From positions 183,933-247,932 of IMG/VR virus record IMGVR_UViG_3300031951_021456: DNA of 64,000 bases. One strand, given 5' to 3'. Positions 9,427-53,236 of this stretch are shown here, one piece after another. Position 1 is the first letter of the stretch. Every line of letters begins with the position of its first letter. The notes under the pieces were generated by a model that was not told the DNA's origin, made no database searches, and saw only the letters and a program-made list of their open reading frames with translations. The position numbers were made by a program, and so were the translations under genes.

Positions 9427-9810
9427 TTAATTTTCTTTAAATGTGGACAATTTTTCTAATTTTGTTTGCAATTCAATAACTTGTTGTTCTAAAATTTCAA
9501 TTCTATCAACAACAGTTAATTCAGTTGCACCCTCTTCAGGTTCAATAAAACCAATATGATCAAGTATAAATTTAATCTGTTCATTTAATCTAGGTATTTC
9601 TAATATATTTCCCACCTTCAAAGCAAATTCACGGTTTGGTCTAAACTTTTTCTTTACGATTTCTATATCAGTTTTAATTTTCTTTAAATGTGGACAATTC
9701 TTTGGATCTATACATGATGAATCTGAGTTCTTATTTGTTTCTATATCATCAGGTGCATAACACCATCCGCAATCCCAATAATTACATATCATAGCTTTTA
9801 GTTGTCGCAT
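9427..9810 (-). CDS. Hypothetical protein with N-terminal Cys cluster
   Basis: CNYWDCGWC...CIDPKNCP. Confidence 0.65.
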   Translation of the reverse strand: MRQLKAMICNYWDCGWCYAPDDIETNKNSDSSCIDPKNCPHLKKIKTDIEIVKKKFRPNREFALKVGNILEIPRLNEQIKFILDHIGFIEPEEGATELTVVDRIEILEQQVIELQTKLEKLSTFKEN

Positions 9811-10238
9811 CCAATAAAGAGCTGTAAAACCGGTAATGTATAATTTAGCTCCACCAGTAATAGAGAACCCCCAATAAGCTCCTTAGTCGCCAAGAATGCC
9901 TTAAATGCAGCATCATTTAATGCATTATTTTTATGATATATTGTATTATATACTGCCTCTGAAGCGATATAAGCAAAACTATCTTTCATTTCCCCGTTAA
10001 TCATTATAACAGAAGGAATAATTGTTCTAATTTTAGTTAAATAACTGCACCTAGGCCCAATCATATAATTCTTTTCTTCATTAATAGATTTTAGACGTTT
10101 AATGGATAAAGTATCCAAGTAAATCCAGAAGTTCAATACATCTTTCCAATTGGGTCCTAGAAAACGTTCAGGGTACTCTAGAGCAGTTTGGTCATTTAAG
10201 AGATCTACAAATCTTTGATGTGTTGTAGAGATTTTCAT
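9798..10238 (-). CDS. LGPNW-family paralog 1
   Basis: MKIS...DQTALEYPERFLGPNWKDVLNFWIYLDTL...ATKELIG; start overlaps the ligase stop. Confidence 0.85.
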   Translation of the reverse strand: MKISTTHQRFVDLLNDQTALEYPERFLGPNWKDVLNFWIYLDTLSIKRLKSINEEKNYMIGPRCSYLTKIRTIIPSVIMINGEMKDSFAYIASEAVYNTIYHKNNALNDAAFKAFLATKELIGGSLLLVELNYTLPVLQLFIGCDN

Positions 10239-11107
10239 AAATCATCCTCATGTCTGAAACCCAAAAACACTGCATGTCTTGGGAGATCCTTGACACCATG
10301 TTGAAAAAATTTATATTTTACATATTTACCAATATATTCTTCTTTATTGTTCCAAATTTCATCTCTCAGTTCGTCATTTAATCCAGAGCCTATTTTAATT
10401 ATTTGACCATCCTTATTTTTTGTAATAAGTTTGCCAGTTGTTTTAGCACCTATAAGACCCTCAATAGAAGTAGATCGCTTAATTCTACCAAAAGCATCCA
10501 ATTGAGCTTCATTCTCATTGTGCATTTTTTCCTCAATGTCAATAAGAATTGATTCTGCATCTTCAAATCTTTTAACTTTCAGAAGAATATTTTCATTAAC
10601 ACTTGATCTGCCAAACTTGTAAGTCCCATAAGGATCTCTTAGCATCATTCCTTCATAGCCATTGTTCAAATAGATTTCTTCTAGTTCATTTAATTGCTCT
10701 TGATTATAAATTGTAGTTCCATAAAGAATTTCATGATTAAGACTCTTAGGAATTAAAGGAAAGTTTAGAATTCTTAAGTAATATGGAAGAATTTCTGGTT
10801 CTAATGGATTCACATAATCAAATAACCAAACTTTAAAATCTGGCTCACCATCAATAGACATAACGGCAGATTGAGAATCTTGAAAGTTATTGCCTGAAGT
10901 TATTTCGCCATCAATTCCATCTGGCAATGTTTCTGAAAGAACTTTTTGAATGTATAGATTTCTTAAGGGTTTAAATGTTCTAGAAAGGGCAATTCCATCA
11001 ATCATGAGAAAACGAATGCCATCAATCTTTGGTGTTGCAATATATGGAAATTTAGCTTTCTCTGGGTTAAACTTTCCTGCAAGTAATGGCTTTTGAATTT
11101 TTGGCAT
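10235..11107 (-). CDS. ATP-dependent DNA ligase, minimal chlorovirus-like type
   Basis: KPLLA, ATPKIDGIR (adenylated Lys), SRTFKP, DGEI, YEGMMLR, YKFGRS, LLKVK, IGSG, PRHAVFLGFRHEDD. Confidence 0.95.
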   Translation of the reverse strand: MPKIQKPLLAGKFNPEKAKFPYIATPKIDGIRFLMIDGIALSRTFKPLRNLYIQKVLSETLPDGIDGEITSGNNFQDSQSAVMSIDGEPDFKVWLFDYVNPLEPEILPYYLRILNFPLIPKSLNHEILYGTTIYNQEQLNELEEIYLNNGYEGMMLRDPYGTYKFGRSSVNENILLKVKRFEDAESILIDIEEKMHNENEAQLDAFGRIKRSTSIEGLIGAKTTGKLITKNKDGQIIKIGSGLNDELRDEIWNNKEEYIGKYVKYKFFQHGVKDLPRHAVFLGFRHEDDL

Positions 11108-11112
11108 TAGAG

Positions 11113-11598
11113 TTAAGTTTTTGATGAATTTTTATGGTATGATGGGTAATTTTTATTAAACCAGTCTTCAAAAAGAGATGTTGCTTTTTCTCTGGCTTCA
11201 TCTATTGAATTTGCCTTTAAACATACACTAAACCAATCTTCTGAATCTTTATAAATTTCATTTAATTTTTGACCACTATTAAGATAATTCCAAACTGTTA
11301 ATCCGCTTATTTGTCGTGCACATAAAAATTCATTAAGTTTTTGTAGATCTTTTTCTCTAATGAATGCTCTAAAATGCAGATCATCTTTATTAAAGGTTTC
11401 TGGTATAGTTGTATCGTTTATTGGCGCTTTAGTAATTTCAAATTTATGAATTGGACATGAAACAAAATCTCTCCATTTTTCTGCAGATTCTAAATCAAAG
11501 AAGAAATCAAAATCACTTATTTCAACCCAACCTTCAGCCATCGTGCTGTTAAGCAGTCCTTCACTATGAACAATATAAATGTAGTTTTGTGTGTTCAT
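11113..11598 (-). CDS. Hypothetical protein, tandem paralog A
   Basis: Shares FDLESAEKWRDF and KAxSIxxAxEKAxxxFEDWFNK with its neighbour. Confidence 0.75.
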   Translation of the reverse strand: MNTQNYIYIVHSEGLLNSTMAEGWVEISDFDFFFDLESAEKWRDFVSCPIHKFEITKAPINDTTIPETFNKDDLHFRAFIREKDLQKLNEFLCARQISGLTVWNYLNSGQKLNEIYKDSEDWFSVCLKANSIDEAREKATSLFEDWFNKNYPSYHKNSSKT

Positions 11599-11600
11599 TT

Positions 11601-12044
11601 TTAGTTATTTTTATTGAACCAGTCTTCAAACATAGTTATTGCTTTTTCTTTAGCTTTTTCTATTGAATTTGTTTTTGTGTATAAGTACAATTTTCTTCCC
11701 CATGTATAGACTTTATCTAGTTGTTCTCCACTTTCAAATATTCTTGAAACCCTTATACCGCTAATCTGATTCCATGAAATGGAATCTTGAATAAATTCTC
11801 TTGGATTTTTTACATTAACATTATTATCTTTTAAAAAAAGATATGCAGTATAGTAAAAATCATTTTTATCATACCACTCAGGGACTTGTTTATTATCTAT
11901 TTCTATTTTAGATTCATCAATTACATATTTAATATCTTCAAATGAAAGAAAATCTCTCCATTTTTCTGCAGATTCTAAATCGTCAAAAATATAATTTCCT
12001 ATACACTCATAGTGAACAGAATAAATGATGATTGAGGTGCTCAT
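11601..12044 (-). CDS. Hypothetical protein, tandem paralog B
   Basis: Shares FDDLESAEKWRDF, QISG and FEDWFNKN with its neighbour. Confidence 0.75.
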   Translation of the reverse strand: MSTSIIIYSVHYECIGNYIFDDLESAEKWRDFLSFEDIKYVIDESKIEIDNKQVPEWYDKNDFYYTAYLFLKDNNVNVKNPREFIQDSISWNQISGIRVSRIFESGEQLDKVYTWGRKLYLYTKTNSIEKAKEKAITMFEDWFNKNN

Positions 12045-12088: not shown

Positions 12089-12304
12089 TTACAATCCCAC
12101 AACATGATACATCTCGCCTTGAGCATTCTTAAACAAAACTTTTCCATTGTTTTTCTCTATATTTTTTGCCTCCTTGTATAAGGCAACTGCGCGGCGAAAA
12201 ATCTCTGCATGAGTGAGGCCAGTTGAATCACTGATGCTATCAAGCTGATCAGCTAACTCTTCTGGCATTTGAACATCAAAACGTAATCTATCAGTAATTG
12301 TCAT
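12089..12304 (-). CDS. Ribbon-helix-helix (CopG-like) regulator
   Basis: FDVQMPEELADQLDSISDSTGLTHAEIFRRAVALYK. Confidence 0.85.
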   Translation of the reverse strand: MTITDRLRFDVQMPEELADQLDSISDSTGLTHAEIFRRAVALYKEAKNIEKNNGKVLFKNAQGEMYHVVGL

Positions 12305-12654: not shown

Positions 12655-12707
12655 TTTATTTAAACAGAATGAGCATAATAAGGGGAGTTTTTGGGGAACA
12701 TGGAACC

Positions 12708-12735
12708 ACTATACATGAGTTTCAAAATTTGTCAA
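12708..12735 (-). promoter_or_regulatory. Sigma70-like promoter driving the leftward block
   Basis: TTGACA-16 nt-TATAGT on the minus strand, at the outer end of the inverted-repeat left arm. Confidence 0.7.
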
Positions 12736-12872
12736 GTACCTAAGGCGCTTATTAGCATTTCCTGACTTAGTATAAGTACCTATTGACAGACCTTCAATAA
12801 TCATGTACGCTCAGCTTTGTCAAAGATGATGCACGATAACTTAAGTGTCTTAAAGAACTTAAATACTCTTAA
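12721..12872. repeat. Left arm of a ~150-bp inverted repeat (partner 16319-16470)
   Basis: 12806-12872 is the exact reverse complement of 16319-16385 (67 bp); further matching blocks CCTGACTTAGTATAAGTACCTATTGACAGACCTT and TTCAAAAT.TGTCAAGTACC. Confidence 0.95.
12783..12811 (+). promoter_or_regulatory. Inward-facing sigma70-like promoter in the left arm
   Basis: TTGACA-17 nt-TACGCT. Confidence 0.55.
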
Positions 12873-12950
12873 AGATACTTAAGTTTTTTATATAACTTAA
12901 ATACTCTTAAGTAACTTAAAGAACTTAAATACTCTTAAAGATACTTAAGT
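12840..12950. repeat. Phased CTTAA array with two exact 36-bp direct repeats (iteron-like)
   Basis: CTTAA at 12840, 12849, 12858, 12868, 12878, 12896, 12906, 12915, 12924, 12934, 12944; the 36-mer CTTAAAGAACTTAAATACTCTTAAAGATACTTAAGT occurs at 12849 and 12915. Confidence 0.9.
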
Positions 12951-12995
12951 AAGTTAAAGAACTTTAATAACTAATTAAAAACAAACTTAAATAAA

Positions 12996-16643: not shown

Positions 16644-16799
16644 ATGAAACAAGTTTTTCCGCAGCTATTCATAAATCTTCCTGTTACTGCTGCCATGATT
16701 GGTGGAATTATTGCAGCTATTCGTGGAATTCCAGATTGGGGTCTTTTTCTTATTATTGGATTTCTATCAATTCGCATACCATCATGGATCAATCTTTGA
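16644..16799 (+). CDS. Small membrane protein (51 aa, not in track)
   Basis: MKQVFPQLFINLPVTAAMIGGIIAAIRGIPDWGLFLIIGFL... Confidence 0.5.
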   Translation: MKQVFPQLFINLPVTAAMIGGIIAAIRGIPDWGLFLIIGFLSIRIPSWINL

Positions 16800-16801
16800 A
16801 A

Positions 16802-17002
16802 ATGAAATTATTTTCATATATGATTCCCACAGAAATAGATCATGATTTAACATACCTAGAAGACAACACCGGGATGTCTCGTGCTGAAATTTTTCGCAGA
16901 GCGATTGCTCTCTATAAGCGAGCTAAGCAAACAGAGAAAGACAAAGGGAATGTAATTCTCAGAAATTCAGACGGAACACTTAGAGAGGTTATTGGTTTTT
17001 AA
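16802..17002 (+). CDS. Ribbon-helix-helix regulator
   Basis: YMIPTEIDHDLTYLEDNTGMSRAEIFRRAIALYKRAK; start moved from 16736. Confidence 0.8.
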   Translation: MKLFSYMIPTEIDHDLTYLEDNTGMSRAEIFRRAIALYKRAKQTEKDKGNVILRNSDGTLREVIGF

Positions 17003-17007: not shown

Positions 17008-17190
17008 ATGCCAAAACGCTATCAATTCAAAACAAGCTGCGAATTTACAGAAAAACTCAATAGGGTATCACGAGAATCAGGACTAAGCAAGCCTGAAGCA
17101 ATTGTAGCCGGAATAGAACTTTTAGATCGTCTTGTGCAAGCTGATAAGGAAGGAAAAGAATTTGCTATTGTAAGTAAACCTGACAATTAA
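17008..17190 (+). CDS. Ribbon-helix-helix-like protein
   Basis: YQFKTSCEFTEKLNRVSRESGLSKPEAIVAGIELL. Confidence 0.7.
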   Translation: MPKRYQFKTSCEFTEKLNRVSRESGLSKPEAIVAGIELLDRLVQADKEGKEFAIVSKPDN

Positions 17191-23503: not shown

Positions 23504-23858
23504 GATTTCCAAGACACATCAAAAATTTGCATATCGCTTAAAAGACCAAACTGCTCTAGAATACCCTGAACGTTTTCTAGGACCCAATTGGAAGAATGTA
23601 TTGAACTTTTGGTTTTATTTGGATACTTTGAGTGTTGAAGATTTTGAGATAGTTTATGATCGTTATTGGGATTTGGATGATCTGAGTGCCATAAAGAATC
23701 TTGCTTGGAAAGCTGTTAAAGATACTATAGAATATTATAATGCAAATGAAGCTTGGTGTGCTACTGCTGGTATTGCTACACGTTGCGCGACTTGTGAACT
23801 CATTGGCTCACACAATCTTAAGTCTTTGAATTTTCTTCCCTTGTTTTTGAATTTATGA
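23493..23858 (+). CDS. LGPNW-family paralog 2 (start moved from 23310)
   Basis: KISKTHQKF...LGPNWKNVLNFW...ATCELIGSH...FLPLF. Confidence 0.85.
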   Translation: MTIKISKTHQKFAYRLKDQTALEYPERFLGPNWKNVLNFWFYLDTLSVEDFEIVYDRYWDLDDLSAIKNLAWKAVKDTIEYYNANEAWCATAGIATRCATCELIGSHNLKSLNFLPLFLNL

Positions 23859-24250
23859 AAATCTCTAAGACTCATCAAACTCTTTCAGAAGTAATGGATG
23901 ATATAAGAGTTCTTACTGAACCTGAAAACTATCTAGGAACTAACTGGAAAGAAGTCTTAAATTTCTGGATCTTTCTAGATACTATGAATGAAGAGCAGTG
24001 GAATAGTATTAATGTTGCTTATTCTTCTTTAAGTTGGGATGAACGAGATGCTTCATTTCTAGAAATTCTTAATCTTGCTAGAGATCTTCGTGGTGTGCGT
24101 TCTGCATGGCTTGCTGCTTCTAGATATTATCTTGCTGCTTCTAGTTGTCGCGGGGCTTCTGGTTTTGCAACATATGAACTTATTAATTCTCATAAGCGTA
24201 AAAAACAAGGAAAATCTTTAGTCTATTTTCCATTATTTTTAAATATATGA
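23855..24250 (+). CDS. LGPNW-family paralog 3
   Basis: MKISKTHQ...LGTNWKEVLNFW...ATYELINSH. Confidence 0.85.
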   Translation: MKISKTHQTLSEVMDDIRVLTEPENYLGTNWKEVLNFWIFLDTMNEEQWNSINVAYSSLSWDERDASFLEILNLARDLRGVRSAWLAASRYYLAASSCRGASGFATYELINSHKRKKQGKSLVYFPLFLNI

Positions 24251-24843
24251 AAATTTCCACCTTTCATAATAATCTTAGTTTTATACTAGAAAATGAAGAA
24301 GTTCTTACTGATCCCTCATTATATTTGGGAAATAATTGGAAATCTATATTAAATTTTTGGTTTTATTTGGAAAACCTAAGTGAACATATAAAACAAAAAA
24401 TCTTAGAATTTGATAAAGAGGAGTATCATAATGCAGGTATTATAAAATATGTAGATTATATTTATCATATTCTTCCACCAGAAGAGGATTATATTTGGGA
24501 TGCAGTTAATATGAATTGTGAAGAAATTTCTTTAAATTGGTATTATGCCTGGGCAACTCTAGAAATTTTATGTCATGATAAAATTTTAAAGAACAATTTA
24601 GAATTGAAATTTCTACCACTTTTTATTCCACCAAAGCCAAAAATTGTTTTAGTGTCAACACCAAAGGGTGAGATGACTATGGACTATATGAAAAGTATAG
24701 TTAATAAATTTTATCCCAATCTTTTTGGTGATCTTCCCGGCGTTGAACCAATTTCTAGTCAAATGTCTAGTGAATACCTGGACATCTCTAGAAACGAGAT
24801 GCCAATTTTAGAACAAATACGAACTGGACGAACAATTTTTTAA
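24247..24843 (+). CDS. LGPNW-family paralog 4 with C-terminal extension
   Basis: MKISTFH...LGNNWKSILNFW...ATLEI...FLPLF plus about 70 aa. Confidence 0.8.
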   Translation: MKISTFHNNLSFILENEEVLTDPSLYLGNNWKSILNFWFYLENLSEHIKQKILEFDKEEYHNAGIIKYVDYIYHILPPEEDYIWDAVNMNCEEISLNWYYAWATLEILCHDKILKNNLELKFLPLFIPPKPKIVLVSTPKGEMTMDYMKSIVNKFYPNLFGDLPGVEPISSQMSSEYLDISRNEMPILEQIRTGRTIF

Positions 24844-24849
24844 CTTATT

Positions 24850-25794
24850 ATGAACGACGAATTTTTATTTACTGAACGACACAGGCCAAAATCTATTGAA
24901 GAGTGCATTTTACCTGAACAACTCAAAGAATATTTCACTGAAATAAAAGATTCTGGAAATGTCCCAAATCTTCTTTTATCTGGACCTTCAGGAACCGGAA
25001 AAACCTCTGTTATCTTAGCTCTAGCTAATGAACTTAACCGAGATTTCATGAAGATCAATGGAAGTGAAGAGCGAAGTATTGATGTTATCCGAAATAAGGT
25101 TAAGTCATATGCTTCAACTATTTCCCTTTCTTCAACTGGGAAAAAATTTCTACTTATTGATGAAGCTGACAATCTTACTCATGATGCTCAACTTGCCTTA
25201 AGGGCTTTCATTGAAGATTTTCAATCCAATTGTGTTTTTATTTTTACATGCAATTATAAAAATCGTATTGACAAAGCTCTCTGTTCTAGATGTATCAATA
25301 AAGAATTTATTTTCCCAGTTGAAGAAAAACCAAAGATTCTTTCTAGATTCTTTAAGGTAGTTTGTTCAATTCTAGAGAATGAAAATCTTGAGTATGACCA
25401 AAAAATTGTTGCATCATTTGTTGGCAAATACTATCCAGATTTTAGGAGAACACTTCTAGAACTTCAGGGTTATGCAAGAAAAGGTTCAATTGACGTTGGT
25501 ATTCTTGCAGTTTCTTCAGATGTCTCAGTTACTGAACTCTTTGAACATATCCGAAACAAAAATTATTCAAACGTCAGAAAATGGGTGATTGACAATATTG
25601 ATAATGACCCATCCATAACAATCAGAAGAATCTTTGATGAGTTATGGAAAAATGAAAAAATCGTTAAGACAACAATCCCTCCATGTGTTATACATCTGGG
25701 GAAATATCAAGATCTTGCAACTCGTGTTGCAGATCAAGAAATCAATTTAATGGCATGTATTACTGAATTAATGTACGAACTTGAATGGAATTAA
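24850..25794 (+). CDS. gp44: Clamp loader large subunit gp44
   Basis: GPSGTGKT, INGS, IDEADN, FIFTCN, SRC, YYPDFRR. Confidence 0.96.
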   Translation: MNDEFLFTERHRPKSIEECILPEQLKEYFTEIKDSGNVPNLLLSGPSGTGKTSVILALANELNRDFMKINGSEERSIDVIRNKVKSYASTISLSSTGKKFLLIDEADNLTHDAQLALRAFIEDFQSNCVFIFTCNYKNRIDKALCSRCINKEFIFPVEEKPKILSRFFKVVCSILENENLEYDQKIVASFVGKYYPDFRRTLLELQGYARKGSIDVGILAVSSDVSVTELFEHIRNKNYSNVRKWVIDNIDNDPSITIRRIFDELWKNEKIVKTTIPPCVIHLGKYQDLATRVADQEINLMACITELMYELEWN

Positions 25795-25796: not shown

Positions 25797-26051
25797 ATGA
25801 ACCGAAATCAATCTGAAGATCTTGCATCACTCGCAGAAGTCTTTTATGCTAATTTGAATGAAGATTCAACTTGGGATAATCCTTTTGGCTATCACAAATG
25901 GAAGCCTGATACAATTATGACAATTTTAGGTGAGGAACCTGAAGGACAATTTAGCGAACTTCATCAAGATTCTCTAACTGATGAACAACGTCAATACGCT
26001 TATATGCTCTATAAGAATCTCCCTAACTTTATTAGTAGCAGTCATGAGTGA
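25797..26051 (+). CDS. Hypothetical protein
   Basis: Operonic ORF (track 25785..26051). Confidence 0.6.
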   Translation: MNRNQSEDLASLAEVFYANLNEDSTWDNPFGYHKWKPDTIMTILGEEPEGQFSELHQDSLTDEQRQYAYMLYKNLPNFISSSHE

Positions 26052-26301
26052 AAACCCGCTTAATCAAGACATGAATGCCTCAAGATGGGCAATGGAATTT
26101 CATTCCATTCATGGTGGTGATGAAGAATTAATGAGAACTTGGTTTGCAAATGCAACTATGTGTGACTGGGATAATCATTTTCGGGTCACAAACCCATATG
26201 AAAATGATTCAATTCATATTCATTTTGACCCTAATAGCCCTAGAGGAGTTATATATAATGAGATATACCAAGATGTCGTATATGTAAATATAAATTTATG
26301 A
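26044..26301 (+). CDS. Hypothetical protein
   Basis: Operonic ORF (track 25981..26301); LMRTWFANA motif. Confidence 0.6.
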   Translation: MSENPLNQDMNASRWAMEFHSIHGGDEELMRTWFANATMCDWDNHFRVTNPYENDSIHIHFDPNSPRGVIYNEIYQDVVYVNINL

Positions 26302-26872: not shown

Positions 26873-27294
26873 GTGAATTGAACAAAGATGGATACATTAA
26901 TTGGGATTCATCCATGATGATTGAAGTGACACTTGATCAACCAGATACATTTTTGGTTGTTAAAGAAACACTTCAGCGTGTTGGAATTTGTAGTAAGCAT
27001 GAAAAGAAACTCTTTCAGAGTGCACATATTCTCCACAAATCTGGAAAATATTATATCGTTTCTTATAAAGAGTTATTTGCCCTTGATGGAAAGTATTGTA
27101 CTTTAACTCAATCTGATTTACAGAGACGTAATAGAATTGCAAAGCTTTTAAGTGATTGGGGCCTTATTACAATTGTTAATCCTGAACAAATTACAGATAT
27201 GGCTCCTTTGAGTCTTATTAAAGTTCTTGCATATAAAGATCGCCAAGATTATGAACTTATTACTAAGTACACAATTGGTGGAAAACGTAAGTGA
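26869..27294 (+). CDS. regA: Translational repressor RegA
   Basis: FLVVKETLQRVGI...LFQSAHILHKSGKYYIVSYKELFALDG...RRNRIAKLL.DWGL. Confidence 0.95.
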   Translation: MSELNKDGYINWDSSMMIEVTLDQPDTFLVVKETLQRVGICSKHEKKLFQSAHILHKSGKYYIVSYKELFALDGKYCTLTQSDLQRRNRIAKLLSDWGLITIVNPEQITDMAPLSLIKVLAYKDRQDYELITKYTIGGKRK

Positions 27295-27773
27295 AAATCT
27301 CGAGGTCACATAGACGCTTTGCACTTTGTTTAGAAGATCAAACTGCTCTAGAATATCCTGAGGATTTTTTAGGACCTAATTGGAAGGATGTACTGAACTT
27401 CTGGATTTATTTGGATACTTTAAGTGAGGAACAGATAAAAATTGTTATAGAGAGTTTTAATGTAGTATGTCCAGTTGAATATACTGCTTATTATGGTTTC
27501 CTTGTGCATTCTGACTATAATGGTTTTCAAGGTGATGCTATGAATGCTGCTCAAAAAACATCTAATTTTTTTATTGAAGCTTCTGCATCAGCAGTTTGTA
27601 GCTCTTCTATAGCTGTTGCTACAGATACTAATAACCTTTACATAAGCTCTATAGACTATATAAAATCTGGCAACTGGGCTGCAGGTCGTGCAACCTATGA
27701 ACTAATCGGTTCACACTTTCTCCTAGATAACAACAAACCATTAACCTTTTTTCCATTGTTTTTAAATTTGTGA
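27291..27773 (+). CDS. LGPNW-family paralog 5
   Basis: Constant N and C termini; GTG start overlaps the regA TGA. Confidence 0.85.
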   Translation: MKISRSHRRFALCLEDQTALEYPEDFLGPNWKDVLNFWIYLDTLSEEQIKIVIESFNVVCPVEYTAYYGFLVHSDYNGFQGDAMNAAQKTSNFFIEASASAVCSSSIAVATDTNNLYISSIDYIKSGNWAAGRATYELIGSHFLLDNNKPLTFFPLFLNL

Positions 27774-28129
27774 AAATCTCGAGGGCACATAGACGCTTTG
27801 CACTTTCTTTAGAGGATCAAACTGCTCTAGAATACCCTGAACGTTTTCTAGGACCTAATTGGAAGAATGTACTGAACTTCTGGATTTATTTGGATGATTT
27901 AAGTGTTGATAAACTTTCTATAATTTATGCACATTATCATGATTTGAGAGACGTGCATACATTAAGGAGTCTTGCAGTGAAAGCTGCTGTAGATACTATA
28001 GGTGGTGAATATAAAACTGCAGCCTGGTGTGCCACTACTAATTCTATTGGGGTTTTGGCAATTTACGAACTCATTGGCTCACATAATCTTGAGACCTTGG
28101 CATTTCTTCCTTTGTTTATAAATCCATGA
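27770..28129 (+). CDS. LGPNW-family paralog 6
   Basis: Constant N and C termini. Confidence 0.85.
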   Translation: MKISRAHRRFALSLEDQTALEYPERFLGPNWKNVLNFWIYLDDLSVDKLSIIYAHYHDLRDVHTLRSLAVKAAVDTIGGEYKTAAWCATTNSIGVLAIYELIGSHNLETLAFLPLFINP

Positions 28130-28563
28130 AAATCTCTAAAACCCATCAACGATTTGCAGACCGTTTAAGAAACCAAAGAGCCTTAGAACATCTAGAAGAG
28201 TTTCTAGGACCTAATTGGAAGGATGTCTTGAACTTTTGGCTTTATTTGGATACTTTAAGTTATGATCAGTGGAAGAGTATTATTGATGCTTATTGTTCTT
28301 TAAGTCACAATGAACGCCAGCTTGCTCGTCGGGCTTCCTGTGTTGCTGCCCGAGCTGTTGCTGCTAGTTATGCTGCTGGTGATGCTGGTTTTTATGCTGC
28401 TGGTGATGCTGGTTTTTATGCTGCTGGTGATGCTGGTTTTTATGCTGCTGGTGATGCTGGTTTTTATGTTGCTGGTTATGCAACTTATGAACTAATGGGT
28501 TCACACATACTTAAATCTCAAGGTAAATCTTTAGTCTCTCTTCCACTGTTTTTAAATGTATGA
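28126..28563 (+). CDS. LGPNW-family paralog 7 with (YAAGDAGF)x4
   Basis: Constant termini with a tandem repeat in the variable core. Confidence 0.85.
   Translation: MKISKTHQRFADRLRNQRALEHLEEFLGPNWKDVLNFWLYLDTLSYDQWKSIIDAYCSLSHNERQLARRASCVAARAVAASYAAGDAGFYAAGDAGFYAAGDAGFYAAGDAGFYVAGYATYELMGSHILKSQGKSLVSLPLFLNV
28369..28481 (+). repeat. 24-bp coding tandem repeat, 4 perfect copies plus a partial one
   Basis: TATGCTGCTGGTGATGCTGGTTTT at 28369, 28393, 28417, 28441. Confidence 0.95.
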
Positions 28564-28979
28564 AAATCTCTAATACACACAAAGAATTTGCTGACCTCTT
28601 GAATAACCCAAGAGCCTTAGAATATCCTGAGGATTTTTTAGGCCCTAATTGGAAGGATGTCTTGAACTTCTGGATTTATTTGGATACTTTAAGTGATGAT
28701 CAGTGGAGTATTATTGAATCTCTCCACGTAGAACTTGGTTACCCTAAATGGAATGAAGGTAATTTAAATGGAAGACAAGAATATTGGCATGTAGTTGCAA
28801 ATAGTGCTTACAAAACAATTAGAGAATATGCAGGCTATGCTGCTCTTGCAGCATCTGGTGATTATCATTGGACGGCTGCTTCTGATGCAACTTATGAACT
28901 TATCGGTTCTCATAAACTTAAAGAACAAGGAAAACCCCTAACCTTTCTCCCACTTTTTAATTATCAACCATCTCTTTAA
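28560..28979 (+). CDS. LGPNW-family paralog 8
   Basis: Constant N and C termini. Confidence 0.85.
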   Translation: MKISNTHKEFADLLNNPRALEYPEDFLGPNWKDVLNFWIYLDTLSDDQWSIIESLHVELGYPKWNEGNLNGRQEYWHVVANSAYKTIREYAGYAALAASGDYHWTAASDATYELIGSHKLKEQGKPLTFLPLFNYQPSL

Positions 28980-28989: not shown

Positions 28990-29445
28990 ATGGAAAACCA
29001 ACTTACACAATCAAAATGTTTTACTGAATTTTCAAAAGCATTGAATAACCCAAGAGTTTTAGAAGCTCCAGAAGAGTTTTTAGGTGATAATTGGAAAAGT
29101 ATTTTACAATTTTGGAACTATTTGGATAGTTTAAGTGATAATGATTTGGAAAATATTGCAGAAAGATTTTTAAATTTACCTAAATTTTCTAAAACTTTCT
29201 CCTTTAAATTGTGCTTTGATGATAATCTTTTAGAAGCTCTTACAGGTCTTTGTTGTGAAACTTTAATGTTAATTAAACTTTGCTCTATACCATGTTATAT
29301 AAAATTAAGTCATCATGTAAATACTGTTATATCTTTAGCTTTGTGTGAATTGTTAGTTAAGAATAAACTAAATGATTCATCTCTAGAAACAGAACCTTCA
29401 ACATTCTTACCACTATTTGATTTTGACCCACAGACCAATACATGA
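28990..29445 (+). CDS. LGPNW-family paralog 9 (divergent)
   Basis: PEEFLGDNWKSILQFWNYLDSL...ELL...FLPLF. Confidence 0.8.
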   Translation: MENQLTQSKCFTEFSKALNNPRVLEAPEEFLGDNWKSILQFWNYLDSLSDNDLENIAERFLNLPKFSKTFSFKLCFDDNLLEALTGLCCETLMLIKLCSIPCYIKLSHHVNTVISLALCELLVKNKLNDSSLETEPSTFLPLFDFDPQTNT

Positions 29446-30405: not shown

Positions 30406-30669
30406 ATGAAAGAAGATAGTTCAGTTTTTTTAGTAGTTCTTGTGGATAATGTAAAACTTATTTCAGGAATTGAGTTTACAAAAAACGAAATTGGTAAAGA
30501 CGAGGTTATTCTAAATAAACCATTTGTGCTTGAAGGATCTAGTTTAATGCCATATCTTTATGCATATACAAATCAAAAAATGTTTTATGTTTCACCAACA
30601 AAAATTATAACTTTAGCTACACCAAAACAAGAAATTTTAGATAATTACATTAAGCTAGTGAGCGAATGA
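30406..30669 (+). CDS. Conserved cyanophage hypothetical protein before gp43
   Basis: 87 aa; usual hsp20-ORF-gp43 synteny. Confidence 0.7.
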   Translation: MKEDSSVFLVVLVDNVKLISGIEFTKNEIGKDEVILNKPFVLEGSSLMPYLYAYTNQKMFYVSPTKIITLATPKQEILDNYIKLVSE

Positions 30670-34206: not shown

Positions 34207-35579
34207 TAATGGAAACAACTGAAGCACTGATTTTAAGAAATTTAATATACAATGAAGACTTTGCAAGAAAATCTTTACCATTCATAAGAACTGAATATTT
34301 CATTGATAGCCTTCAAGGAATTTTATATGATGAGATTTCATCTTTTATCACTGAATATAATTCCCTTCCAACAAAAGAAGCTCTCCATATTGAACTAGAA
34401 AAAAGAACAGATCTAAATGAGCAATCCTTCCCAAAGGTCATGTCATTTCTTTCTGATCTTTCAGAAGAACCAGCAGACAATGAATGGCTTTTAAATACCA
34501 CTGAACAATGGTGTAAAGATAGAGCAGTTTATCTTGCAATTAGACAATGTATTCTTATTGCGGATGGGAATGATACAAAACTTTCAAAGGAATCAATACC
34601 TTCAATCCTTAGTGATGCTCTTGCTGTAAGTTTTGATAGTCATGTTGGTCATGATTATATTGAAGATGCTGAAAGCCGCTATGAGTCTTATACTCTTAAA
34701 GAAGAAAAGCTTCCATTTGATTTGAATTATTTTAATAAGATTACAGATGGTGGATTGTCTCCTAAGACTCTTACAGTTCTTCTTGCATCTACTGGTGCTG
34801 GTAAAAGTCTTGCGATGTGCCATTTTGCAAGTTCATATTTGTCTCAAGGAAAAAATGTACTTTACATTACACTTGAGATGTCTGAAGAGAAAATTGCTCA
34901 AAGAATTGATGCAAATCTTTTAGATATAAAAATTCAAGATTTTTCAAAAATTTCAAAATCTGATTTTGAAACAAAAATTAAACGATTATCATCTAAAACT
35001 CATGGAAAATTAATCATTAAAGAATATCCACCAGTATCTGCACATTCTGGACATTTTAAGGCTTTTATAAATGAACTCAAACTAAAAAAATCTTTTACTC
35101 CTGATTTGATTTTTGTTGACTATTTAAATATATGTGCCTCTAGTAGACTCAAAAATAATGGACAACACAATAGCTATACCACTGTAAAGTCCATTGCAGA
35201 AGAGATTCGTTCAATAGCTGTTGAGTATAATGTTCCTATAATTAGTGCAACTCAAACGGTTAGATCTTCAATTTCTAGTTCAGATTTAAATCTTGCAGAT
35301 ACATCTGAAAGCATTGGGATTACTCATACTGTTGATTATATGTTCGGTCTTATTTCAACTGAAGAATTAGAAAGCATTAATCAAATTATGGTTAAACAAC
35401 TAAAGAACCGATATGGCGCTTTAGATCCTTATAGGAGGTTTACAGTTGGCATAGATAGAGCGAAGATGAGACTTTATGACGTAGAGCAAGAAGCACAAGA
35501 ATCAATCATTCAAGAGAGTGATCTACAGCAAAAACCAAAAGACCTTAAGTCCAAATTTCAAACTTTTAATTTTGAATAA
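34203..35579 (+). CDS. gp41: Replicative helicase gp41
   Basis: ASTGAGKS, YITLEM, FVDYLN, SATQT, QLKNRYG. Confidence 0.96.
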   Translation: MIMETTEALILRNLIYNEDFARKSLPFIRTEYFIDSLQGILYDEISSFITEYNSLPTKEALHIELEKRTDLNEQSFPKVMSFLSDLSEEPADNEWLLNTTEQWCKDRAVYLAIRQCILIADGNDTKLSKESIPSILSDALAVSFDSHVGHDYIEDAESRYESYTLKEEKLPFDLNYFNKITDGGLSPKTLTVLLASTGAGKSLAMCHFASSYLSQGKNVLYITLEMSEEKIAQRIDANLLDIKIQDFSKISKSDFETKIKRLSSKTHGKLIIKEYPPVSAHSGHFKAFINELKLKKSFTPDLIFVDYLNICASSRLKNNGQHNSYTTVKSIAEEIRSIAVEYNVPIISATQTVRSSISSSDLNLADTSESIGITHTVDYMFGLISTEELESINQIMVKQLKNRYGALDPYRRFTVGIDRAKMRLYDVEQEAQESIIQESDLQQKPKDLKSKFQTFNFE

Positions 35580-35580
35580 A

Positions 35581-35955
35581 ATGACCACAATTACAGATAC
35601 TAGCCAAAAAGATAGATTAGAAGAATTATTAAATCATGCTAGAAGACAATTAGAGCATAATGATAAAATTGAAACCGAACGACAAAAACGGATACCTCGT
35701 TTTCCTGACGAAAAAACTACAAAGCAAAAAGAACAAGAATATCTTGAGAAACTAAAATTAAATCCAGATTTAGAAATACCAGAAGAATTGTTATACACTA
35801 CAATGACTGGAATGAATATTCAGCTTGAGAATAGTGTTGAAGAATATCCGACTCTTAAATACTCATGCCTCAGATTAATTCCTCATACACAAATAAAGCA
35901 GATAAAATTTTATCCAGAAAGTGAAATGTTTTTAATAAAAAAGTTCAACAAGTAG
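35581..35955 (+). CDS. Hypothetical protein, tandem paralog A
   Basis: EQEYLEKLKLNPDLEIP...TTMTG; start moved from 35518. Confidence 0.7.
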   Translation: MTTITDTSQKDRLEELLNHARRQLEHNDKIETERQKRIPRFPDEKTTKQKEQEYLEKLKLNPDLEIPEELLYTTMTGMNIQLENSVEEYPTLKYSCLRLIPHTQIKQIKFYPESEMFLIKKFNK

Positions 35956-35961: not shown

Positions 35962-36294
35962 ATGTTTACTATTTCAGACCAAATCCGGCAACAAATTCTT
36001 GAAGTTTTTGATAAAAATGAAGAGATCGTATCATATTACGATCTCGGTAAATCTTCAAGAGAATCAGAAAAAGAATATCTTGAAGCAAAGAAAACTAATC
36101 CAGATCTTGAATTGCCATCTGCATTAAAATTTACAACCATTACTGGAATTGAAAATCAAATTGAATCTTGTAATGTGAATCCTGATAAGGATAATGTTGA
36201 TAGATTTCATGGGTTTTATTTACGGCAACAGCCAAAAGACAATAATGGCACTTTAAGGTTTAGTATAGAAAAATTCCTAATAACCAAAGTCTAA
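35962..36294 (+). CDS. Hypothetical protein, tandem paralog B
   Basis: EKEYLEAKKTNPDLELP...TTITG. Confidence 0.7.
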   Translation: MFTISDQIRQQILEVFDKNEEIVSYYDLGKSSRESEKEYLEAKKTNPDLELPSALKFTTITGIENQIESCNVNPDKDNVDRFHGFYLRQQPKDNNGTLRFSIEKFLITKV

Positions 36295-36318: not shown

Positions 36319-36729
36319 ATGACACAACAAATTACAACAACTGAATACGCAGAATTTGTCGCCAAAGTGACTTCAAAACCCTCCACAGATTTGAATGTTC
36401 TTATTGCCCGTTTGCAAGAACTACAAGACCTTGGGGCAAATGTTCCTCAACTCATTACGGCATCTCATGGTATTAGTGCTGAAGCTGGTGAGTTTACTGA
36501 CATCGTAAAGAAAATTTTATGGCAATCTAAACCATACAACGAAGAAAACATCCTTAAATTGAAGAAAGAATTGGGAGATGTATTATTTTACGTTCAAATG
36601 GCTTGTACTGCATTGGGTGTAACAATTGATGAAGTTCTTCAAATGAATTTTGAAAAACTTTCTGCTCGTTATCCTGAAGGTACATTTAATGTAAACCGCT
36701 CAGAAAACCGTAAAGAGGGAGATTTATGA
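36319..36729 (+). CDS. mazG: MazG-like nucleoside triphosphate pyrophosphohydrolase
   Basis: GISAEAGEFTDIVKK...KKELGDVLFY...NFEKLSARYP. Confidence 0.92.
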   Translation: MTQQITTTEYAEFVAKVTSKPSTDLNVLIARLQELQDLGANVPQLITASHGISAEAGEFTDIVKKILWQSKPYNEENILKLKKELGDVLFYVQMACTALGVTIDEVLQMNFEKLSARYPEGTFNVNRSENRKEGDL

Positions 36730-37205
36730 AAACTATCAAATCTATAAATATCTGCTCAGATCACAATTCTGAGTGGACGGTTGAACCAGTTTTTGATAAC
36801 GGTGATAATTTTGACGAAAAATGGAAAGATGTACCAAATGATATGGAGTTTTACAAATACACTGAAAATTTTGAAGAGTTTCTTAAAAGCTACTTAGATT
36901 TTCTTTCAGATTATGATATAGTAAACGTAAAATTTTATAGTGACTATGTTGCTCAACCGATAAAAGAACTTGCTGAACTCGCTAGATCTGTAAAGGGATA
37001 TTTTACGGGGTTTGCTACATCTCCATTTTTTATCTATAAATTTAAATCCTATCCTACAAATAATGGTTTATCTTTTGATACAAAAGAAGCCCTTATTAAA
37101 CATTGTTCTCAATTGAGTAATTGTGTATTTTACGGTGTCACATATTCTCAAAAAACAAATGAATACATAATACGTTATACTGAAGTAGAGCCAACAAAAA
37201 AGTAA
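36726..37205 (+). CDS. Hypothetical protein
   Basis: C-terminus paralogous to the next gene (FTGF..P.FIY...RYTEVEPT). Confidence 0.7.
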   Translation: MKTIKSINICSDHNSEWTVEPVFDNGDNFDEKWKDVPNDMEFYKYTENFEEFLKSYLDFLSDYDIVNVKFYSDYVAQPIKELAELARSVKGYFTGFATSPFFIYKFKSYPTNNGLSFDTKEALIKHCSQLSNCVFYGVTYSQKTNEYIIRYTEVEPTKK

Positions 37206-37209: not shown

Positions 37210-37572
37210 ATGAAAAACATCCAGGAACCACAAACAGTTTTTAGCTATGACGAGTGGCTTAAATTCATGTCAAATATTGGCGCAGAATTTCAACCGGACT
37301 TGGTAGAATTTATCTCATCTATTAAAGAAAGTTTTATTGGATTTTGTAAAACCCCACTTATCATATATGATGGAAAAGTTGGCACGGCCCGATCCGCAGT
37401 ATTTAACTCTAAACATGAAGTTTTAAATTTTTTAAAAGATAAATCTTGTTTTCTTTATAGTTTAGATGAATTTTCTACAATGTTGCCATCTGGAGAAAAA
37501 GAAATTTCATTAAAAATGAGGTATATTGAAGTAGAACCAACAACACAAACAAAACTTGAACCACAATGCTAA
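37210..37572 (+). CDS. Hypothetical protein
   Basis: FIGF..P.IIY...RYIEVEPT. Confidence 0.7.
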   Translation: MKNIQEPQTVFSYDEWLKFMSNIGAEFQPDLVEFISSIKESFIGFCKTPLIIYDGKVGTARSAVFNSKHEVLNFLKDKSCFLYSLDEFSTMLPSGEKEISLKMRYIEVEPTTQTKLEPQC

Positions 37573-48638: not shown

Positions 48639-48644
48639 AACCTT

Positions 48645-50605: not shown

Positions 50606-50761
50606 ATGGTTACCTCAACCGATGTTTTTGCCTTTAGATCAAAATTAGATAAAATAATGAATAGTCTTTATGAAAAAGATTTACCCAAAGAGCAAAAAGA
50701 TGTTGCAATTTTTTATCTCACTCAGGTAATAGATGCGGTTGAACAGACTCTGAAATCATGA
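50606..50761 (+). CDS. Small late protein (51 aa, not in track)
   Basis: TAAATA at 50582; MVTSTDVFAFRSKLDKIMNSL... Confidence 0.5.
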   Translation: MVTSTDVFAFRSKLDKIMNSLYEKDLPKEQKDVAIFYLTQVIDAVEQTLKS

Positions 50762-51158
50762 CTTTATTGTAGATATTCTCACGTTCGGATGAGAAAAATT
50801 TACCTTCAACGTTAGTATTATAATAGTCTTCTCTCATAATTACATCTCGCCTAAACTGTTCAGATGTTTCAAAATAAGACATTGATTTTTTGTGTGGACA
50901 AAGATATAGTATTGTTTTTTTGAAGTTTGATATTCCAAGTTCTTTAATATCATCCTTTAATTCATCACAACTTCCGCAATAAGTTCTCCAATTGCTTTCT
51001 GTCTTTTTTCTTCGTCCAGTTTTTGGGTCTTTTCGCCTTTGCCAGAAAGTTTTTTTGCCGATGTATTTTTTATTGTTGGTTAAATTTTCAATAAGATATA
51101 CAAATCCCTCCATATCTTCTGGGACAGCCTCTAAAATTTTATCGTTGTAGTACCACAT
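50718..51158 (-). CDS. GIY-YIG family nuclease
   Basis: GFVYLIENLTNNKKYIGKK; TATAAATA at 51168-51175 on the minus strand. Confidence 0.85.
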   Translation of the reverse strand: MWYYNDKILEAVPEDMEGFVYLIENLTNNKKYIGKKTFWQRRKDPKTGRRKKTESNWRTYCGSCDELKDDIKELGISNFKKTILYLCPHKKSMSYFETSEQFRRDVIMREDYYNTNVEGKFFSSERENIYNKVMISESVQPHLLPE

Positions 51159-51748: not shown

Positions 51749-51814
51749 ACTGTCCACTTCTTTAAATTAATCTTGAAAAAGCTGCTAAACTTACCGCAAG
51801 ACTGAAATCCAGTC

Positions 51815-51925: not shown

Positions 51926-52387
51926 ATGCAATTTAACAAAACTTTTTCACTTCTTTTTGCTAGTGCTCTTCTGTTTACACCAGTTGAAGCAACTGCAGTT
52001 TCTTCCCCAAATTATGAAATCTTTGAGACCACAAATTCTCAAATGAATACTGAAAAATGGGGACTAGAGAACTATCACAATCAACGAAAAGTTGCCAATG
52101 TTTATACTGGAACTGCAAGTTGGTATGGTCCTGGTTTTTATGGTAATAGAACCGCGAATGGTGAAGTTTATCGCCCAGGAACATATACAATTGCCCATAG
52201 GTATTTACGATTTGGGACAAGAGTTCGTGTCACTAATTTAAACAATGGCCGAAGTGCCATAGCTAGAGTGAACGATCGTGGTCCATATGTTGGCGGAAGA
52301 ATTGTTGATTTGGGTCATGGCATTGCAAGAGATCTTGGAGTAATTTCAAGTGGTCTTGCTCATGTTAGACTTGAGGTTCTTGATTGA
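51926..52387 (+). CDS. rlpA: RlpA-like lytic transglycosylase (DPBB domain) with signal peptide
   Basis: GTASWYGPGFYGNRTANGE...IAHR.LRFGTRVRVTNLNNGRS...VNDRGPY...IVDL. Confidence 0.92.
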   Translation: MQFNKTFSLLFASALLFTPVEATAVSSPNYEIFETTNSQMNTEKWGLENYHNQRKVANVYTGTASWYGPGFYGNRTANGEVYRPGTYTIAHRYLRFGTRVRVTNLNNGRSAIARVNDRGPYVGGRIVDLGHGIARDLGVISSGLAHVRLEVLD

Positions 52388-52407
52388 AAGAAGTGATTTA
52401 GTAATGT

Positions 52408-52432
52408 TGGGGCAATTAGGTGCCCCATTTTT
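52408..52432 (+). terminator. Rho-independent terminator after rlpA
   Basis: TGGGGCA-ATTAGG-TGCCCCA followed by a T run. Confidence 0.75.
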
Positions 52433-52454
52433 AATTATTCATTTTATTTTCATA

Positions 52455-52853
52455 ATGATTATTTCTAAAATTCATCAGGATCTGGCTACATCTACATCCT
52501 CTACAATATTAGAGTGTCCAGAAGGATTTCTTGGACCCAATTGGAAGAATGTACTGAACTTTTGGATTTATTTGGATACTTTAAATTCTGACCAATTGAA
52601 GACTGTTGGGTGTAGGTATATAAAATCTTATCCCACACTTAGTTCAATTGAAAAATATTATTGGGCTGATACACTTTCTATAGAAGGCGATAAAGTATCA
52701 TTGGCTTCATTTATTGCTGGATGTAATATTTCTGATAGAGCAGGTGGTTATGCTGCTGATTCCGTGTTATCCGCAACCCGCGAGCTTTTCTATTCCTATC
52801 ATTTAGGCGGAGAAAAGTCTTTTGTATTTCTTCCATTGTTTCTAAATCCATGA
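52455..52853 (+). CDS. LGPNW-family paralog 10 (start moved from 52350)
   Basis: PEGFLGPNWKNVLNFWIYLDTL...ATREL...FLPLF. Confidence 0.85.
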   Translation: MIISKIHQDLATSTSSTILECPEGFLGPNWKNVLNFWIYLDTLNSDQLKTVGCRYIKSYPTLSSIEKYYWADTLSIEGDKVSLASFIAGCNISDRAGGYAADSVLSATRELFYSYHLGGEKSFVFLPLFLNP

Positions 52854-53236
52854 AAATTTCTGAATCCCATCAATGTTTTGCAGATCATTTAGATGATCAA
52901 ACTGCTCTAGAATATCCTGAACGTTTTCTTGGACCTAATTGGAAAGATGTATTGAATTTCTGGATTTATTTGGACACTTTAAGTGATGGAGATTTTAGGT
53001 TAATTGTAGAGCGTTGTCGGGCCTTAGATTTAGATGTAGGGGCTAGAGTTTTTGATGAATACTCTGCTCGTTCGGCCGCTGCTGTAGATACTATAGGTGG
53101 TGAATATAAGACTGCAGCTTGGTATGCCCATCCTACATTATTAGGAGCTTGTGCAACCCTTGAACTCATTGGCTCCCATAAAATTCTAGAACAAAATAAA
53201 CCATTATCATTTCTATTGACACATCTCAATCTCTAA
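52850..53236 (+). CDS. LGPNW-family paralog 11
   Basis: MKISESHQ...LGPNWKDVLNFW...ATLELIGSH. Confidence 0.85.
   Translation: MKISESHQCFADHLDDQTALEYPERFLGPNWKDVLNFWIYLDTLSDGDFRLIVERCRALDLDVGARVFDEYSARSAAAVDTIGGEYKTAAWYAHPTLLGACATLELIGSHKILEQNKPLSFLLTHLNL

Follow-up and report, generated by a model that had tools for sequence, protein, structure and literature searches.

Why does a phage keep many diverged copies of one small gene among the genes of its replication machinery? This question is raised by the stretch of viral DNA analysed here (the window; 64,000 nucleotides, positions 183,933 to 247,932 of IMG/VR virus record IMGVR_UViG_3300031951_021456), in which eleven paralogous genes encode small proteins with nearly constant ends and a strongly varying core. 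We propose that they belong to a phage-specific multigene family in which a constant helical frame carries a variable face, and that this family is a repertoire of protein binders. Taken as a whole, this proposal is tentative, and we hold it with slightly less than even confidence. Its parts stand differently: the descriptive part, i. e. the frame, the variable hairpin, the turnover and the number of copies, is very likely correct, while the binder or counter-defence function is possible, with our judgement leaning somewhat against it.

The list of open reading frames (ORFs) of the window contains the eleven paralogs, which are 119-198 aa long, at exactly the positions where an earlier note on this DNA had placed eleven genes with constant ends. 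Their alignment has 13 invariant and 11 near-invariant columns, all of them within the first ~50 and the last ~25 residues; between these ends, the members vary both in length and in sequence and can hardly be aligned. When a profile of the eleven proteins was run against all six-frame ORFs of the window without any filter, it returned exactly these eleven (E-values of 1e-39 to 1e-57), and the next match had an E-value of about 1. Thus, the set is complete for the window, and a chance pattern is excluded. A Pfam scan of the flanking genes identified an ATP-dependent DNA ligase, the gp45 clamp, the gp44/gp62 clamp loader, regA, Hsp20, a DPBB/RlpA-like protein and a C39-like peptidase, in agreement with the neighbours that had been named before. 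The members are the following:

9798-10238, minus strand: singleton of 146 aa directly 3' of the DNA ligase gene; degenerate C-terminal tail (VLQLFIGCDN); profile score 149 bits
23493-23858, plus strand: 121 aa, opens the three-gene array located between gp45 and gp44; overlap of 11 nt between its start and the gp45 end
23855-24250, plus strand: 131 aa, gp45-gp44 array; ATGA stop/start overlap with the preceding member
24247-24843, plus strand: 198 aa, gp45-gp44 array; C-terminal extension of ~68 aa beyond the FLPLF tail
27291-27773, plus strand: 160 aa, opens the five-gene array that separates regA from hsp20; its GTG start codon overlaps the stop of regA; longest core
27770-28129, plus strand: 119 aa, minimal form, regA-hsp20 array; modelled with AlphaFold2
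28126-28563, plus strand: 145 aa, regA-hsp20 array; four AAGDAGFY units in the core
28560-28979, plus strand: 139 aa, regA-hsp20 array; modelled with AlphaFold2
28990-29445, plus strand: 151 aa, last gene of the regA-hsp20 array; most divergent member, with a Cys-rich core and a MENQLTQS start; 128 bits
52455-52853, plus strand: 132 aa, first gene of the two-gene array between the DPBB/RlpA-like gene and the C39-like peptidase gene
52850-53236, plus strand: 128 aa, second gene of this array; degenerate tail (FLLTHLNL)

Within the arrays, the stop codons overlap the start codons of the following genes (ATGA or GTGA), and overlaps with gp45 and regA are seen for the leading genes of their arrays; the member at 28990 is the only one of the regA-hsp20 array that lacks an overlap with its neighbour. 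This arrangement points to co-transcription and translational coupling with the replication-type neighbours, and the family genes are probably expressed in this way as judged from the gene layout. They lie on the same strand as the replication and early-type genes. A scan for sigma-70-like promoters found fewer sites in the window than in shuffled sequence, which argues against an array-specific promoter. The encoded proteins have isoelectric points of 4.6-6.9 and grand average of hydropathy values of -0.51 to 0.07, and no signal peptide or membrane helix was noticed when the translations of the window members were inspected by eye. With the structure predictions described below, we can state with high confidence that the family consists of small (about 115-160 aa), cytoplasmic, acidic-to-neutral all-alpha proteins.

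What do the constant ends build, and where does the variation go? AlphaFold2, supplied with an alignment of 119 sequences, predicts the member at 27770-28129 to be a compact all-alpha domain (mean predicted local distance difference test, pLDDT, 96.3; predicted template modelling score, pTM, 0.89) with helices at residues 5-14, 18-21, 24-27, 31-43, 46-57, 62-77, 79-88 and 92-102, and a tail helix at 114-117. The second model, that of the 139-aa member at 28560-28979, has the same topology at a pLDDT of 89.8; its extra residues are accommodated in a low-confidence loop (61-69) and in longer alpha4 and alpha5 helices. In these models, the frame has two parts: the ~55 N-terminal residues, which comprise helices 1-3 and the FLGPNWK turn, and the ~25 C-terminal residues with helix 6 and a packed hydrophobic tail. 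The hypervariable core is predicted to correspond to the alpha3-alpha4 loop and the alpha4/alpha5 hairpin. Among 218 members, conservation in the hairpin follows a helical period: it is found at positions 65, 68/69, 72/73, 76/77, 84/85/86 and 88, where Ala, Trp or Tyr predominate, and the hairpin positions between them as well as the loop are nearly free. As compared to the phage background, the cores of these 218 members are enriched in Ala (3.3-fold), Trp (3.0-fold), Tyr and Cys (1.6-fold each) and depleted of Lys, Gln, Glu, Pro and Leu, so that the earlier description of the core as Ala/Tyr/Trp-rich is confirmed. In 23 of the 218 cores, an (A-A-x-x)n repeat is overt and comprises up to 14 units, the two x positions being mostly Arg, Gly or Trp followed by Tyr, Asp, Ser or Asn. 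We infer that the hairpin consists of an Ala packing stripe and an exposed face that would be rich in residues typical of protein-binding sites. The earlier note had called the core hypervariable: this is true for its length and sequence, but the core is not free-form, as the periodic stripe of Ala and aromatic residues is kept. The idea of a conserved scaffold with variable surfaces is supported by both models and by the helical periodicity of conservation in the hairpin.

The frame carries several strongly conserved polar residues, i. e. S4 (99%), H7 (94%), N30 (99%), D42 (86%), E100 (96%) and H105 (76%). Such conservation is unusual for a mere scaffold, and the N- and C-terminal segments that bear these residues pack together in the model. 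One might thus imagine a small enzyme, or a cofactor- or metal-binding protein, with one activity shared by all members, in which the hairpin would be a specificity lid or simply unconstrained. However, S4, N30 and S45 are located exactly at helix N-caps in the first model, and this position explains their conservation structurally. Moreover, there is no match to an enzyme family by sequence or by fold, and thirty-nine diverged copies of one enzyme would have no obvious rationale in a phage. We therefore consider a shared enzymatic or ligand-binding activity improbable.

The hydrophobic C-terminal tail (L-x-F-L-P-L-F-L-N) invites a different explanation, in which the proteins would be adaptors that dock with this tail onto gp45, the host beta clamp or a host protease, and bring in cargo with the variable face. 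A T4-type C-terminal clamp-binding motif is known for tails of the gp43/gp33/gp55 type, and the gp43 protein of the window (family B DNA polymerase, 30666-33164, plus strand) indeed ends with such a tail, TLDSLFG. The family tail has a loosely similar h-x-x-L-F pattern, and one array directly follows gp45. Yet, both models place the tail as a short helix against the domain (the last block of the first model has a pLDDT of 92) and not as a free peptide. It varies among the members (FTSLL, IVQLF, ALPLC), is replaced in divergent relatives (KVAYNMIMSHKKS), and its codons double as the upstream region of the next gene. Finally, most of the roughly 15 clusters mapped over the genome are far away from gp45. 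A docking role is unlikely, and we regard it as very improbable.

Constant N-termini followed by variable bodies are also found in the internal proteins IPI, IPII and IPIII of phage T4, which are small, multi-copy and fast-evolving. If the family were of this kind, its proteins would be packaged into the virion via the N-terminus and the variable body would be injected to act against restriction; the T4 protein IPI* is an anti-restriction protein. The layout follows the same logic, with a constant N-terminus starting with MK and a variable body, encoded at hyperplastic multi-copy loci of a T4-type phage. The constant part of the T4 proteins is a capsid-targeting peptide of ~10 residues that is removed by the prohead protease after (L/I)-x-E, whereas the constant parts of the family comprise ~55 and 25 residues and form a fold. 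The cleavage motif is absent: a Glu at position 21 is present in only 37% of the members, and the P3 residue is Ala or Val. Moreover, the genes belong to replication and early-type modules, where they are coupled to gp45 and regA, and are not found among head genes. Packaging into the virion is thus quite improbable.

How large is the family, and which phages carry it? Two contigs match the window with 99-100% identity, one of 247,932 bp from IMG/VR and one of 249,543 bp from a lake metagenome. The window has a GC content of 32.4%, and its sequence is present in many freshwater and lake DNA runs. A scan of metagenome contigs returned mostly this phage genome itself. Among 50,697 phage records, megablast with 8 kb of the window and tblastn with two family members gave no match, the latter even at an E-value of 5. 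From its gene content and sequence, the source is an uncultured T4-type freshwater phage of ~250 kb. The gp44 clamp loader is ~52% identical to that of Synechococcus myoviruses, which is the one observation that makes a cyanobacterial host plausible. Elsewhere in this phage lineage, outside the window in the twin and a related genome (L042 and L024), there are genes for a tyrosyl-tRNA synthetase, a CCA-adding/poly(A) polymerase-type enzyme, an RNA ligase and an NAD-salvage pair (NAMPT and NMNAT/Nudix); to our knowledge, these are unusual accessories for T4-type cyanophages.

Eleven members in four loci, as reported at first, is correct for the window but understates the family: The near-identical 247,932-bp contig encodes at least 39 members in ~15 clusters, as counted in the ~175 kb of it that were read, and these genes occupy ~15 kb or ~6% of the genome. 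All reading frames, eleven in the window and 39 genome-wide, are intact. Dense arrangements also exist in relatives. At the end of a 236 kb relative, eleven members are found within 15 kb, and in the densest array seen, on an 8,861-bp contig of a more distant phage (L043, JGI 3300057123), at least 13 of 18 genes belong to the family; several of these have N-terminal extensions of ~60-100 aa, and one is a tandem fusion of two domains. An exhaustive profile search of 1.84 billion representatives yielded 392 clusters at E <= 0.001, and two word-indexed searches of 5.8 billion proteins gave 229 and 165 matches, those listed being without exception annotated as hypothetical and devoid of a Pfam domain. 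The relatives (about 390 clusters) are unnamed and originate from lake metagenomes or viral contigs, and there was not a single confirmed member in 185,579 bacterial and archaeal genomes. The family is restricted to one clade of phages. One of the 39, a 371-aa protein encoded outside the window (L009:18350-19504; 92,659-93,771 of the near-identical genome), contains only the N-terminal module of ~45 residues (LENPEQVLGPNCKSILDFWESLD), and its remaining ~320 residues have no match in Pfam. The constant N-terminal module can thus be combined with another body. A 1,518-aa protein that initially appeared as a relative (P0210) turned out to be a low-complexity repeat and was discarded.

Do these genes still change, and by which routes? 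Among the window paralogs, synonymous differences in the ends are close to saturation (proportion of synonymous differences, pS, 0.65-0.70) and nonsynonymous differences are much rarer (pN 0.28-0.36); the ends are thus kept by purifying selection on the protein and do not reflect recent copying. Core positions have similar pN and pS values. A tree of 38 members from the whole genome has a star-like shape and long tips. The array labels require 27 changes on this tree as compared to a mean of 29.4 for shuffled labels, and the arrays are not clades. The members have therefore been dispersed, and tandem neighbours differ no less than members of distant loci do. In some pairs, there are shared 5' patches (nt ~1-145) with 85-94% nucleotide identity. 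For the adjacent genes at 27291 and 27770, the first 136 nt are 92% identical with a pS of 0.21. These 5' patches and a patch shared by two cores indicate that segments are occasionally exchanged between paralogs, including distant ones. The relevant elements are:

27983-28033, plus strand: 51-nt core patch encoding DTIGGEYKTAAW and its neighbours, 94% identical to 53078-53128, which is 25 kb away
53078-53128, plus strand: partner of the 51-nt patch, in the member at 52850
28368-28481, plus strand: 24-bp tandem repeat, 4.8 copies with 97% matches, within the core of the member at 28126

The tandem repeat is the site of the only difference that separates the window from a twin strain (249,370-bp contig) across 16.4 kb: in the twin, the core of the member at 28126 is two 24-bp units (AAGDAGFY) shorter, resulting in a 129-aa protein (P0004). 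At a larger distance, whole genes come and go. The gp45-gp44 slot holds three members in the window versus one or none in phages with an 80-83% identical gp44, and the regA-hsp20 slot holds five versus none. Neither copy number nor core is thus invariant across related phages; the earlier note had named such invariance as a refutation of its interpretation, which is therefore supported in this respect. Gene replacement can be seen in three closely related phages, L031, L032 and L033, in which the flanks are 96-98% identical at the protein and 93-94% at the DNA level and the single gene after gp45 differs sharply. Between L031 and L033, the ends of this gene are 91-93% identical and the number of AAxx units differs. 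The family gene of L032 is only ~50% identical, and its rate of synonymous substitution (dS) of 1.1 is far above the 0.22-0.33 of the flanks, indicating that another paralog has replaced the gene at this slot. In the comparison of L031 with L033, the ratio of nonsynonymous to synonymous substitution rates (dN/dS) is 0.10 for gp45 and 0.12 for gp44, and for the family gene 0.62 in the N-terminal end, 0 in the C-terminal end and 1.44 in the core, the latter value being calculated over 51 codons of a repeat region with difficult alignment and not differing significantly from 1. The dN of the core is 13-47 times that of the flanks. These values reveal a loss of constraint in the core relative to the flanks; they are compatible with diversifying selection, and positive selection is not proven by them. 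The copy-number differences between related phages at the same slots, the repeat change in the twin strain and the core dN/dS of ~1.4 as opposed to ~0.1 in the flanks all agree with the earlier suggestion that the family is expandable. With slippage, patch exchange, slot replacement and gain or loss within arrays taking place beside nearly invariant core genes, the data illustrate unusually clearly by which routes a family of phage genes can diversify in nature.

Two further observations concern strain-level variation. In contigs assembled from four DNA runs, depth spikes and graph breaks occur, mainly from collapse at the shared 5' segments; they are contig artefacts as much as biology, and nothing is concluded from them here. 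In one lake metagenome (run X7), a related strain is represented by a contig that skips 254 bp between small ORFs downstream of gp44 (26043-26298) and has no depth over 23880-24879, where two members are located. This may reflect strain-level gene loss, although contig data cannot prove absence.

A constant frame around a variable middle is superficially also what one would expect of the target of a diversity-generating retroelement (DGR) or of precursors of ribosomally synthesized and post-translationally modified peptides (RiPPs), and one array adjoins the C39-like peptidase gene; multi-copy genes might, moreover, be functionless or selfish duplicates. The intact frames and the purifying selection on the ends argue against selfish duplicates. 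Proteins of 119-198 aa with confident globular models (pLDDT 96 and 90) are no peptides, and only one of ~15 loci is close to a C39-like peptidase, so that RiPP precursors are ruled out by the globular fold and the single locus at a peptidase. A DGR target was likewise rejected. Ten of the larger ORFs of the window, of unassigned or T4-type function, gave no match to a reverse transcriptase when scanned against Pfam, and the other large ORFs either carry domains of replication or nucleotide metabolism or were inspected by eye. When all cores were compared with the window by BLAST, the matches were other family members only, with no template-like copy, and the cores of the twin strains are identical except for the one slippage event. 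Together, these three explanations are hardly credible.

Does the family belong to anything that is already known? The earlier note recognised no named family, and our searches with Pfam, PHROGs, NCBIfam, PADLOC and PDB sequence profiles found no family match either. One of ten members scanned, the Ala-repeat member at 28126, weakly matched phrog_8332, a group of unknown function (E 1.4e-5), which is probably an effect of low complexity, and none of ten longer relatives did so. PADLOC-DB gave only three single-member matches with E-values of 0.008-0.045, by which a component of a defence system is ruled out; as PADLOC models defence systems, this search is no real test for anti-defence. Structure comparison led to the same result. 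Foldseek searches of the PDB, the AFDB clusters and the Swiss-Prot models gave nothing informative, with no match above a template modelling (TM) score of 0.43 in the AFDB clusters, and in BFVD only another uncharacterised protein of an uncultured phage was found. With VIA-align, the best match of both models was chain A of 8OWS, a toxin/immunity complex, at a Z-score of 4.5. Helical models typically reach ~14 in this method, and 4.5 is below its stated noise level for helical proteins; there is thus no close solved analogue, and the match to 8OWS is unreliable. The family and its fold are previously undescribed.

The one lead on the fold came from ESM-Atlas, where the first model aligned with a virus-dominated cluster of 242-aa proteins, half of which have DUF6197 (TM 0.74 by query, 118 of 119 residues, root-mean-square deviation 2.9 A). 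DUF6197 (PF19698) is an uncharacterised domain of ~110 aa from actinophages and actinobacteria. Its representatives gp47 and gp72 of Gordonia phage Nebulosus resemble the family in being phage-borne and of similar size (119 and 138 aa). However, the cluster was not recovered with the second model, the structural neighbours of genuine DUF6197 proteins do not include the family, and the match may concern the half of the 242-aa proteins that is not DUF6197. The Pfam hidden Markov model of DUF6197 (gathering score 24.6 bits) matched none of the eleven window members and none of 96 diverse members even at an E-value of 10, whereas gp47 and gp72 as positive controls scored 87 and 66 bits. In hhalign, 96 family sequences against a shallow profile of five DUF6197 proteins gave a probability of 0.2% and an E-value of 0.37, and this five-sequence profile matched neither the window nor the pieces of the 248 kb genome. 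The motifs differ as well, with GW.KG…GC.CALG…FND in DUF6197 and FLGPNWK…NFW.YLD…ELIGSH in the family. Identity with DUF6197 is thus rejected at the sequence level. Like the family, gp47 and gp72 are encoded next to replication genes, that of gp47 just downstream of the gene for DNA polymerase I, and two copies or tandem two-domain proteins occur in some phages; the one paper found to mention DUF6197 reports no expansion to tens of copies (PMC10586128).

The only domain that was found fused to family domains in longer relatives is the ribbon-helix-helix (RHH, CopG-type) domain: a distant relative, P0242, has it at its N-terminus, and in another one, P0161, it is placed between two family domains. 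The layout of an RHH domain plus a binding domain is typical of many type II antitoxins. It is tempting to speculate that the family domain is the partner-binding module of RHH proteins, and that the stand-alone copies are pseudo-antitoxins that sequester the toxins of toxin-antitoxin or abortive infection systems, or modulate RHH repressors of the phage. This would be a speculative and narrower form of the binder idea. At least three separate genes of the window encode the same RHH subtype (AEIFRRAIALYK) and share the motif AE(I/V)FRRA(I/V)ALYK:

7779-8234, minus strand: RHH (CopG-type) paralog
12089-12304, minus strand: RHH paralog
16736-17002, plus strand: RHH paralog
17008-17190, plus strand: possibly a further RHH paralog

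The PDB match to the toxin/immunity complex 8OWS, the best though weak one for either model, would fit this idea, but it is below noise, and chain A of 8OWS may be either the toxin or the immunity protein. Moreover, the RHH fusions are present in only a few of the ~390 clusters and may in part be artefacts of gene calling, the RHH genes of the window are not adjacent to family members, and no toxin partner is known. We thus regard the pseudo-antitoxin explanation as rather unlikely.

What, then, would a repertoire of binders do? According to our proposal, the constant frame would ensure folding and perhaps offer a contact common to the members, and the variable face of each member would bind a different protein target during infection. 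Whole genes would be gained and lost in head-to-tail arrays, and the conserved junctions of 3' end, ATGA and 5' end could be substrates for unequal recombination. The family would thus be a germline repertoire of binders for host takeover, for counter-defence or for use against competing phages. In its boldest form, this proposal would describe dozens of single-domain binders on an unseen alpha-helical fold, each paralog neutralising a different defence or toxin protein of the host with a paratope-like (Ala-Ala-x-x)n hairpin that diversifies by repeat slippage, patch exchange between paralogs and array expansion. This strict version is doubtful, but if it were true, the family would be the phage counterpart of the variable-receptor repertoires of cellular immune systems, and the size of the repertoire, ~6% of the genome, would mirror the diversity of defences in the freshwater host.

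Several points weigh against the binder repertoire. No RNA run was among those listed with the window sequence. The members have no similarity to any characterised anti-defence protein. The conserved residues S4, H7, N30, D42, E100 and H105 could mark a shared active or ligand site beyond their role at helix caps. The elevated dN/dS of the core does not differ significantly from neutrality, and in the twin strains, which are 99.9% identical, the cores are without substitutions, so that diversification has to be episodic rather than continuous. On the other hand, phage genomes are compact, and the investment of ~15 kb in no fewer than 39 diverged copies implies that selection is strong and varied. 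Large eukaryotic viruses and parasites are well known for multigene families of this size; in the searchable literature, we found no comparable family of such size in a phage. If the members are target-specific inhibitors, the family would be a catalogue of counter-defence proteins and, by way of their targets, a probe for undiscovered defences of freshwater bacteria. For protein engineers, a fold that has no solved analogue and bears a variable face encoded by repeats might be a natural binder scaffold.

Other features of the window were noted in passing. Pairs of small paralogous ORFs share motifs seen in their translations (DLESAEKWRDF…EDWFNKN, EYLE..K.NPDLE.P and Y.EVEPT), and from these the genome seems to be generally prone to tandem duplication. 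Nested repeats between two divergent genes could be an iteron or operator array, for instance for the nearby RHH proteins, or an origin. One ORF may be a split, truncated or duplicated terminase gene, and another one, recognised by eye, is probably a seg-type homing endonuclease gene inserted among plus-strand genes. These features are located as follows:

8297-9097, minus strand: 266-aa ORF matching only the N-terminal ATPase domain of T4-type large terminases (Terminase_6N); no nuclease half follows on this strand
11113-11598 and 11601-12044, minus strand: tandem pair of small paralogous ORFs
12836-12972, within the 340-bp intergenic region 12655-12995: nested tandem repeats of ~9, 19, 38 and 66 bp, based on CTTAA(A/G), ~14 copies
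35518-35955 and 35962-36294, plus strand: tandem pair of small paralogous ORFs
36726-37205 and 37210-37572, plus strand: tandem pair of small paralogous ORFs
50718-51158, minus strand: lone opposite-strand ORF of 146 aa with a GIY-YIG-like N-terminus (VYLIEN…KYIGKK)
54446-54520, plus strand: tRNA-Arg(TCT)
55823-55894, plus strand: tRNA-Gly(TCC)

In addition to the internal proteins of T4 discussed above, three known systems resemble the family. (i) The DGR proteins such as Mtd of the Bordetella phage combine a stable scaffold with a hypervariable ligand-binding surface, as may be the case here. In contrast to them, the family has no reverse transcriptase found in the window, no template repeat and no adenine-directed point variation, and its fold is helical rather than that of a C-type lectin. 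(ii) The helical-repeat binder scaffolds, natural or designed, such as ankyrin or alpha-repeat binders, offer a functional analogy, with a constant stripe of small residues and varying exposed Trp, Tyr, Arg, Asp, Ser and Gly positions; there is no homology to them, and the family forms a single compact domain and not a solenoid. (iii) Under selection, phage T4 amplifies segments with the toxin inhibitor gene tifA against ToxIN (eLife 2022, PMC9391042). Such genomic accordions and viral multigene families, which include the host-range families of poxviruses and African swine fever virus, share with the family the head-to-tail arrays and the copy numbers that differ among close relatives, and they have been read as, or shown to be, counter-defence. 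Their copies are recent and nearly identical, whereas the paralogs described here are ancient, spread over ~15 loci, not clustered by array and individually diversified. Virus-encoded multigene families that vary in copy number and combine a constant frame with a variable face are thus of a kind that is known from other viruses.

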